In this document: positions 38,401 to 51,630 of the stretch, in pieces | Position numbering within the stretch: the first letter of the stretch is position 1 | Layout of the letters: every line of letters begins with the position of its first letter | Origin: Octopus sinensis | Taxonomy: Eukaryota | Length of the DNA stretch: 64,000 bases | Direction: 5' to 3' | NCBI RefSeq assembly: GCF_006345805.1 | Contig: NC_043022.1 | Span: 806,001 to 870,000 of the forward strand | The notes under the pieces: generated by a model | The model's input: the letters and a program-made list of their open reading frames with translations, nothing else | Told to the model about the DNA's origin: nothing | Databases searched by the model: none | Position numbers and translations under genes: made by a program

Positions 38401-41400
38401 ATAATAATAATAATCGTGAAGTATATTTTTTCACTTAAATGTGGCTAGCCCCTAAGGGTGGATGCTAGTGTAGCAGTAGCCCCAGGAGGACACCTCCTCC
38501 AGCTGGCTATTGACACACTTTCTGTGCCCTATCAGTATTTGCAAAGGGAAGCCATCCTTCCCGTCTTCAACCTGACATGATACACACGGACTCGAGTTTC
38601 AGGGTATTGACCCGTCATCAGTGTGTGACAATCATAGTTGTCGATGCAAAGTAGGCCTCCTTTGCAAATAATAATAATAATAGATACTTTGTACTCTAGG
38701 CACAAGGGCTGAAATATTTGAGTGAAGGGGGCCGGTCAATTGCATCAATACAGGGGCTCAACTGGTACGAATTGTATGAACCTCAAATGGAGGCAAAGTT
38801 GATCTGGAAAAATTTGAATTTCGAACTTAAAAAATGCTGCAAATCATTTTCTCAAGCCTGCTAACGATTCTGGCAGCTTTCCAATTTATTATTAATAATA
38901 ATAATAATGATAATCCTTTCTACTGGAAGCACAAGGCCTGAAATTTGGGGGAAAGGATTAAGTCGATTACATCGACCCCCAGTACTCAACTGGTACTTTA
39001 TTTATCAACCCCACCGAAAGGGTACAAAACAGTTCTATATTTAAGAGATGAGGAATTATGTACATTATTTACATTTGACGGACATTTGTCCTCATCTTGT
39101 TTGTTGTTGACACCTGAAGAAGGCTGGAGATGATATCAGCCGAAACATTAACAACAAACAAGATGAGGACAAATGTCCGTCAAATGTAAATAATATATAG
39201 GTACAAAAGTCTGAAATATTTGGGGTAAGAAGTTAGTGGATTACGTCAACCCCAGCGCATAACTGCTACTTATTTCATCAATCCCAAAAAGCTGGAGGAA
39301 ATATTGTGCAGCAGAGATAACAATTCTGCCAGAAATTTTGAGGGAGTGGGGTGAGTCAATTACATCAACCCCAGTGCCCAACTGGTACTTATCTTATTGA
39401 GCCTGAAAGGGATGAAAGGTAAAGTCAACCTCAACAGAATTTGAACTCAGATGGATGAGATGTCTGGCATGCTAACAGTTCTACCAGCTTGCCACTTTAA
39501 TGAGAAGAAGAATAATAATCCTTTCTACTAAAGAGACAAGGCCTGAAATTTGGGGAAAGGGGATATTCGATTACATCAACCCCAGTATGTAACTGGTACT
39601 TAATTTATTGACCCCTGAAAGGCAAAGTCGACCTCAGCAGAATTTGAACTTAGAACATGAAGACGGATGAAATACCGCCAAGCATTTTGCCTGGCATGCT
39701 AACCAATCCTTTCTACTGGAAGCACAAGACCTGAAATTTGTGGGGAGAGGGGAGTCGATTTGATTGACCCCTGTATGCCAAATTCCTCCTCTCAGGAATT
39801 CACACAATAAAATATAAATTTCCTTTACAAGAAATTTGTAAATTCCAAGTTGTGAACATTTTTGTTGGTAACTTTGCTTCAAAGGGGCCTCACTTTAGGA
39901 GTTACCTTTGCAAAAATCTTAGATTTTCTCCTAATAAAAGAACTGCTTGTTATTGCTATTGTAATAAGTTCTGGGGGTCTTATTTTTTCTTATTAAAACC
40001 TCAGAGACTGTTTAGGAAGAAATTACTGAATATTAAAGCCACAGTTTGCTCTGCTGGGGATTGCTTAGTTTCACCTCGTTTCTAGGCTCGCGTGGAGGGT
40101 GTCATCTGTTTGTAGTTTCGACTGTTCCGCTCAATCCACCTCTACAGTGTCGTGAAGTGTTTGCCTGGTTTTTCAGGTCGTGTTCCACTGCCCAAGCGCT
40201 CCAGTATGGCATCAATTGTGATGACCTACCTGCACATTAAACACATGTCCACCATGTTCCTCATGTGCTCTCGCCACGGTCCGTCATACGCTTTAGATGA
40301 CGACGGCACATACGAACCTGCGGACGAGAACGGCAACAGGAACCAAATCGAGGCCTCGCTTCCTGCCTCCATCACCAACTTGACAACAAATAGAACCACT
40401 GACGAATACGAAACAACATCCGAGCTCCTCCTTCATCAGCAACCCATTCAGCCTTCCTCCCCGTCTTCTTTTTCTTCTCTCCTCGCTCCTCCTCCTCCTC
40501 CTACTCCTGTCCATTCTCTTCCCTCTACTCATCCTCATCAGCAGCATACTCCTCAGGATAATCAAAACAACAACTTCTACGACCAACAACACAATCATTT
40601 CCGCTTATTTCATCTTTTCAATCGATCCGATCCTGAACCTCTGCCTTCAACGGAAGGTAATACTGACCACAAATTAGCCGCAATACTAACTGACCCCTAA
40701 TTACTCTAACAGCTCTTCCCATTTTCTCAGTGTTGCAATTGCACAAATTCTTCACCTACGCATTTTTCATTATCCCTTTTTTTTAAATAAACATAGGTTC
40801 TGCACACTTTCTCAATTTCTGCTGAGAAACAGAAACATTTCTATCAAGAATCTTCCAGGCTTGATCTTATTAGAATTCCTGCTGTTTCATTGCAATTCCT
40901 CTTACATTCTCTCTTTCCCTCCCCTTTTTTCCAGAGTTTCTCCCTTCATATTTCTTTTCTCATATTTTTCCCTTCAAAAGAAAACTAACCCCAAATTCCT
41001 CTGCCTCTCTAGCTCCTTGAGGGCTCTCTCCTTCACTCCAAGGCTCCCAAAGCTGCCACTGCACCTCAGATAAATTTTAGAACACTCCTCATTTTTATAA
41101 CAAAGAACCACAATGTTTTGCTGTGACTTCTTCATTAATCTTTTATTTTTCCTCTAACAATAATTCTTCCTGTTGTCTGCCAATTAAAAATTTGCTAGGA
41201 AATTCCTTTGTAGAAATTCCCATTACAAGATTATTTCACCATCCAGTGAATTCTGTAGAAATTTCTAGAAGTTTTAGATAAGCAGGGAAACATGGTTTTC
41301 TCCACTTCACTAAAATAGTTTAGTTGCAGCACAATGATGTACTTTTCATTCATGTTTTTCATTGTACTTTTATGTATTTTTTTTTATATACTCAAATAAT

Positions 41401-51630: not shown

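Follow-up and report, generated by a model that had tools for sequence, protein, structure and literature searches.

GRK2-type kinases rely on their PH domain and on Gbetagamma for recruitment to active receptors, and in cephalopods a kinase of this type shuts off rhodopsin. The isolated C-terminal fragment of GRK2 called betaARKct (residues 495-689), engineered by Koch, Lefkowitz and colleagues, is used as a Gbetagamma scavenger. Among vertebrate kinases, GRK4 has in-frame alternative exons (the alpha, beta, gamma and delta forms) and GRK6 has alternative C-termini (GRK6A/B/C), while for the linker between the RH and PH domains we know of no equivalent module in the GRK2/3 subfamily. Here, we analyzed a 64,000-nt stretch of the Octopus sinensis genome (assembly GCF_006345805.1, contig NC_043022.1, positions 806,001 to 870,000 of the forward strand; hereafter the window, with positions counted from its first letter), which carries most of a GRK2-type gene on the plus strand. 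To judge from sequence comparison, a block at 40177-40656 inside one intron of this gene is a genuine protein-coding exon, conserved in the same GRK intron across a deep cephalopod divergence. With a probability that we put at about one half, it would be a cassette exon that is alternatively included in the full-length kinase.

The canonical cephalopod rhodopsin kinase, represented by octopus ORK (Kikkawa et al., 1998, as cited in PMC3307776) and by the 79.6 kDa Ov-GRK1 (PMC8465341), comes from the same gene as exons A-L of the window. The published cephalopod rhodopsin kinases correspond to the exon-skipping form, with exon I joined to exon J, and the passages describing them do not mention the 480-nt exon. 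Neither a PH-only nor an insert-bearing isoform of a GRK2-type kinase was described in the literature searched, which gave limited coverage. A predicted 287 amino acid (aa) open reading frame (ORF) that starts within the exon would resemble betaARKct in having the same PH domain and C-terminal Gbetagamma-binding helix and no kinase domain. However, betaARKct is artificial, whereas the 287-aa ORF is known from genomic sequence, has an unrelated 150-aa N-terminal region and lacks the equivalent of residues 495-555. The alternative exons of GRK4 and GRK6 are comparable in being optional, in lying outside the catalytic core and in altering membrane-targeting or regulatory regions, but these kinases belong to another subfamily without a PH domain and their exons are short and unrelated, in contrast to the mostly disordered module of 117-161 aa predicted here at the RH-PH linker.

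By similarity to known kinases, the host gene is a member of the GRK2/GRK3 (beta-ARK) subfamily, of the "rhodopsin kinase" type. A tblastn search with a GRK2 probe (used for mapping alone) matched nine exons at 8396-33958 to GRK2 residues 182-543 with 67-94% identity, covering an AGC kinase domain of the GRK type and the C-terminal helices of the RH domain. The window begins at approximately GRK2 residue 182, with the N-terminal RH exons lying upstream of it, and exons A-L together encode the kinase domain, the terminal RH helices, the PH domain and the C-tail. Exons I-L align with bovine GRK2 residues 499-667 (E=8e-32) and contain a Pfam PH domain (PF00169, 30.2 bits against a cut-off of 25.1). 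Exon I (33821-33980), defined by tblastn and translation and corresponding to bovine GRK2 residues 499-546, encodes the last RH helices and the start of the RH-PH linker and ends in phase 1 at the donor AAAAAG|GTCAGA. The intron that follows is 14,029 nt long and leads to exon J (48010-48158), the first PH-domain exon according to Pfam, which the same probe placed at 48009; it is entered in phase 1 after ...caacag| and takes one upstream base. The middle of the PH domain is encoded by exon K (49817-49933), and its C-terminal helix by exon L (51484-51630), which continues into the C-tail and the stop codon TAG at 51628-51630.

To look for relatives of the exon at 40177-40656, protein searches were carried out in three word-indexed collections and, exhaustively with HMMER, in 1.84 billion representatives. 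The exon peptide was found in three other genomes, in each as an unspliced genomic ORF (P0001/P0128, P0006 and P0007), and one further protein match (P0008) was discarded as spurious low-complexity similarity. Exact look-ups of the window's own ORF, at 164 and 182 aa, returned no match, and Pfam reported no domain in the insert, save low-complexity noise for P0006. Since a full-length cephalopod GRK was not among the searched protein collections, where the best identity to exons H and I was 71%, the lack of an annotated isoform in them is uninformative. At the DNA level, four species could be compared, which fall into two lineages. The first comprises the window and a close relative represented by two individuals (L001 and L011); L001 is 78% identical to the window over 2.6 kb, and because the two are colinear over this distance, the L001 and L011 contigs are unspliced genomic DNA. 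The second comprises a distant relative, for which the same contig was present in seven runs (L003-L008), and a further species (L010) whose 126-kb ENA contig ctg113216l also carries exons J, K and L (L009), with the exon located ~15.0 kb upstream of them on the same strand.

When positions 33000-52000 of the window were compared with 35.7 kb of the ENA contig, only five alignable blocks were found between the lineages in these intervals: 40140-40309, 40634-40660 and exons J, K and L. The first two blocks cover a 3´ splice-site region and a 5´ splice site, a pattern indicative of an internal exon. The length of the ORF would not be significant in itself, because the window holds 19 ORFs of at least 120 aa, mostly of low complexity, but conservation in other species lifts the exon ORF above chance. 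An origin from a transposable element was ruled out, the block being single-copy in the window. For the predicted 287-aa product, AlphaFold2 run on the single sequence gave an unusable model (pLDDT 40.5, predicted template modelling score 0.24).

The first-pass annotation of this DNA, which proposed a kinase-less product made from inside the intron, had predicted translation from the ATG at 40206-40208, in the context ccAgtATGG, through a frame open to the donor GAAG|GTAATA at 40656/40657, and the sequence reads as described. The 451 nt at 40206-40656 leave the donor in phase 1, as required by exon J, and together with exons J, K and L encode exactly 287 aa (32.8 kDa). Conservation bears out this part of the prediction as well, with the ATG (with a purine at -3), the frame and the donor kept in all four species and a ratio of nonsynonymous to synonymous substitution rates (dN/dS) <1. 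Between the window and L001, dN/dS is 0.43 in the ATG frame vs 0.65 and 1.2 in the other two frames, 18 of the 37 substitutions fall at third positions (P=0.04), and the single indel is 3 nt long. L003 and L010, which show no indel in the exon, give a dN/dS of 0.29 overall and of 0.12 for the first 33 codons.

This constraint is unevenly distributed along the exon. The ATG opens a conserved motif of 33 codons (40206-40304), M[AS]S[IV]VMTYL[HR][IV]K[HR][MI]S[TN]MFL[MI]CSR[HR][GS]P[ST]Y[AV]LDD[DE], that is hydrophobic and basic in character and ends in an acidic patch; between lineages ~17 of its 20 synonymous sites have changed, which is saturation, with a dN of 0.12-0.16. The motif is followed by a fast-evolving, low-complexity spacer (40305-40633), acidic at first, then T/S/A/P-rich and finally His/Gln/Phe-rich, which is 43 codons shorter in the other lineage yet stays His-rich, with every indel a multiple of 3. 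A single Pro-to-His replacement within the His-rich part distinguishes the two individuals of the close relative (P0001 and P0128, the latter from L011 472-969) and is a coding polymorphism in this spacer. Conservation resumes at the exon end, encoding EPLPSTE, and the donor (40634-40660), where identity between the lineages is 96% over 27 nt. The donor GAAG|GTAA is invariant in the four species, and between-lineage conservation ends 4 nt into the intron past it. If the donor were unused, the frame would run through a tail at 40657-40700 to the TAA at 40698-40700, but this tail is without coding constraint; across lineages the corresponding tails show no relationship, and those of L003 and L010 are set apart by a 1-nt indel. 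As coding constraint stops at the donor, the exon must be spliced at 40656 and a single-exon reading fails.

The GC- and CpG-rich composition noted in the first-pass annotation is real. Across 40086-40656, GC content is 0.47-0.52 and the observed/expected ratio of CpG is 0.9-1.1, vs 0-0.7 in the flanks. However, the other GRK exons are similar, with CpG observed/expected ratios of 0.54-0.98 and a GC content at third codon positions of 0.51-0.58, vs 0.50 in the 40086-40656 block. The composition is thus that of a coding exon in a CpG-poor intron and not of a promoter island.

The 5´ boundary of the exon is where our analysis departs from the earlier proposal, which had the exon begin at 40086 with a non-coding leader. 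The acceptor tttctag|G is present at this position, no ATG occurs in 40086-40205, and the TAG at 40113-40115 is in frame with the ATG and 93 nt upstream of it, all as proposed. However, the 40086 acceptor and its 120-nt leader are conserved only in the close relative L001 and are absent in L003 and L010; the distant lineage has no similarity to 40086-40139, none past ~45 nt from 40177, and a 64-nt indel in this region. Deep conservation is seen for a 3´ splice-site region at 40140-40176, comprising a branch-point-like (C/G)TGA(C/A), a pyrimidine tract and the invariant 13-mer CCTGGTTTTTCAG, which ends at 40176 and is identical in the window, L001, L003-L008 and L010. The acceptor at 40176/40177 lies 29 nt upstream of the ATG in the lineage of the window and 26 nt upstream of it in the second lineage, a difference of 3 nt, and the lengths from acceptor to donor in the four species (480, 483, 351 and 351 nt) are all multiples of 3 and all open.

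Defined in this way, the candidate alternative exon (40177-40656) is 480 nt long, runs from phase 1 to phase 1, contains no stop codon and would encode a 160-aa insert of about 18 kDa (18.1) ending in EPLPSTE-G. Since exon I ends in phase 1, splicing from exon I to 40177 and from 40656 to exon J reads through uninterrupted, and in the window the frame stays open across exon I, 40177-40656 and exon J. Of the AG dinucleotides in 39900-40206, the one at 40176 alone joins exon I in frame without a stop. Joining exon I to 40086 shifts the frame and leads to a stop at 40238-40240, and the acceptor at 40148 (ctctacag|) and every other AG in this interval were likewise ruled out as in-frame partners of exon I. 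A length that is a multiple of 3, an open frame and a phase matching both exon I and exon J are the signature of a frame-preserving cassette rather than of a first coding exon, and by our estimate the open in-frame stretch before the ATG would favor the cassette with a likelihood ratio of roughly 5-15. At the acceptor itself, 40174-40182 reads CAG|GTCGTG, and joining to exon I would recreate AAG|GTCGTG, which resembles the exon I donor AAG|GTCAGA. A recursive splice site at this CAG|GT was ruled out, as the GT is not conserved (CAG|AC in L003 and L010).

In the cassette model, skipping would join exon I to exon J and give the canonical kinase of ~80 kDa. Upon inclusion, the donor at 33980|GT would join the acceptor at 40177 and the donor at 40656 would join exon J, adding 160 aa (117-161 aa across species) in frame to the surface linker that leads from the final RH helix to the first strand of the PH domain, at approximately Gly556 of bovine GRK2. 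The product, ~98 kDa, would keep the kinase, RH and PH domains. We infer both junctions, as well as any function of the insert, which may alter the tethering or targeting of the PH/Gbetagamma-binding module with respect to the kinase core, or may add a docking motif. The insertion site is a linker of variable length in other animals and lies at the RH/PH boundary of solved GRK2 structures. In a non-cephalopod GRK2-like locus (L012 1-620, ENA ERZ27284377 k119_77729), which is GC-rich with short introns and has no intron at the I/J position, the RH-PH linker is 31 aa longer and of low complexity (AAAASSASSGATGGGGEESDEEWAGYAPSAQ). If the model holds, cephalopods would have a new means of tuning receptor recruitment, a conserved module of 117-161 aa that can be included or left out exactly where the catalytic/RH core meets the PH domain. 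Such a module could work by changing the length of the tether, by contributing a docking or membrane motif, or by means of a stretch that is rich in His and sensitive to metal or pH.

Several observations weigh against inclusion of the exon in the full-length kinase. In the collections searched, which contained no cephalopod transcript spanning the I-J region, neither junction was found in a transcript, all three relatives' exon ORFs coming from unspliced genomic contigs. The sole RNA-derived contig, a relative's L002, has exons J, K and L without the exon, and no exon ORF came from that sample, so that inclusion there would be minor if any; L002 runs from retained intron into J-K-L and is uninformative on the upstream partner of exon J. 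The frame argument upstream of the ATG comprises 8-9 codons in effectively two independent lineages, and these codons are poorly conserved between them (RVPLP vs CSHS). The strongly conserved motif starts at the conserved Met with its -3 purine, as a true N-terminus would. Finally, in the close pair the 91 nt upstream of 40177 (40086-40176) show 2 differences, fewer than the substitution rate of the exon would give (P=0.025), which also fits a longer leader exon. The flanks at 40045-40176 and 40657-40800 are 86-98% identical to L001, but the other lineage has no such conservation past ~45 nt. They could represent splicing-regulatory intron, which is common beside regulated exons, or a leader exon specific to one lineage.

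A rival reading is the product envisaged in the first-pass annotation, for which transcription would start within the I-J intron, either at or near the conserved block or at a non-coding exon farther upstream that is joined to 40086 or 40177, and translation would begin at ATG 40206 and continue from 40656 into exon J. The resulting protein (287 aa, 32.8 kDa) would consist of the 150-aa N-terminal region, the PH domain and the C-tail without kinase or RH domain, and could bind Gbetagamma and lipid and compete with the full-length GRK. Of this proposal, the conserved coding exon, its frame, its donor and the phase match to exon J stand, but the 5´ boundary and the cassette-like frame from 40177 do not agree with it, and we regard the kinase-less product as unlikely, preferring to it an in-frame cassette within the full-length kinase. 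In its favor, the ATG is kept in the four species with A or G at -3, the conserved motif begins at that Met, the in-frame TAG precedes it with no ATG in between from 40086 on, and the donor phase gives a 287-aa ORF in which the PH domain and the C-terminal helix are intact. The segment 40045-40176, which includes the ag|40086 acceptor and the 120-nt leader, is 95-98% identical to L001, and upstream a consensus donor, TTTGAG|GTAAGT, is present at 37826/37827. This donor follows a G-rich patch, the two lying within 37760-37835, and an ATG is found 9 nt before it; the segment is the candidate 5´ exon of the first-pass annotation.

Other observations speak against this product. An unspliced transcript with its own start site would have no need for the conserved branch point, pyrimidine tract and CAG at 40140-40176, although the site would serve a variant spliced to 40177. 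As described above, the other lineage is without the 40086 acceptor and leader, and no promoter or 5´-exon block is conserved over the preceding 6.2 kb of the window or 10 kb of the ENA contig. CpG enrichment does not exceed that of ordinary GRK exons, the open stretch between acceptor and ATG, in register by multiples of 3, would be left as a coincidence, and the product would be without the residues equivalent to betaARKct 495-555. The cassette and the intronic start could also coexist. It is conceivable, if doubtful, that an intronic start is used in some tissues to give a natural 287-aa kinase-less protein that, like betaARKct, would compete with the cephalopod rhodopsin kinase for Gbetagamma and lipid, with the 33-aa N-terminal motif providing targeting of its own. 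If the exon does start a kinase-less product, instead of or in addition to serving as a cassette, the gene would encode its own dominant-negative regulator. Under either reading, cephalopod gene annotation should include the exon 40177-40656.

A use of the block as an alternative last exon appears improbable. Here, exon I would be spliced to 40177, the donor at 40656 would be left unused, translation would stop at TAA 40698-40700 and the mRNA would end past the AATAAA at 40786-40791, so that the protein would have the kinase and RH domains and a tail of 174 aa but lack the PH domain, the converse of the kinase-less product. The stop is reached 14 codons past the donor, and the block conserved between the window and L001 continues, free of indels, for 144 nt past the donor and closes right behind the AATAAA, which L001 shares and which may mark an alternative, unproven 3´ end. 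However, the tail lacks coding constraint, with 3 of its 14 residues changed in the close species and an unrelated, frameshifted sequence in the other lineage, the donor is conserved at the nucleotide level in four species, and chance alone would produce an AATAAA about once per kb in this AT-rich intron. Slightly weaker still, and very improbable, is a separate nested gene, either a lone exon with an ORF of 164-169 aa or a first coding exon whose splicing partners lie outside the GRK gene: the ORF does close soon after the donor in each genome (164, 165, 169 and 167 aa) and no known homologue or domain ties the peptide to GRKs, but constraint that stops at the donor defeats the single-exon version, conservation downstream resumes in both lineages at GRK exons J, K and L, with J in the matching phase, and the same GRK intron and strand are kept across the deep divergence.

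Some further features of the window were noted. An N run at 49986-50085 within the K-L intron, flanked by a TA/TG microsatellite, is an assembly gap of nominal length; it begins 52 nt past the donor of exon K (49933|GT), and 1,398 nt separate its end from the acceptor of exon L. The reading frame is untouched by this gap, because the relative's spliced transcript contig L002, which encodes P0003, joins K straight to L, and the gap-free genome of a relative has no further conserved block in the K-L intron. Exon K ends with the codon CCG (Pro) in the window (49930-49933) vs CAG (Gln) in the relative's transcript (L002 335-341), with the same donor and frame. Upstream of exon A, a C-rich segment with strong GC skew (6536-7262) contains ORFs of 103-178 aa that are of microsatellite or low-complexity type (poly-SL, poly-CV) and bear no sign of coding. 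Finally, an interspersed repeat of ~170-220 nt resembling a short interspersed nuclear element has 17 matches in the window, on both strands and with 77-90% identity, among them 33295-33520 (the reference copy), 6346-6514, 24695-24915 (minus strand), 26277-26435, 39348-39451 (minus), 39556-39703 (minus), 47805-47920 and 55438-55605. Three copies lie just upstream of the alternative exon, and the first 67 nt of L001 match one copy.

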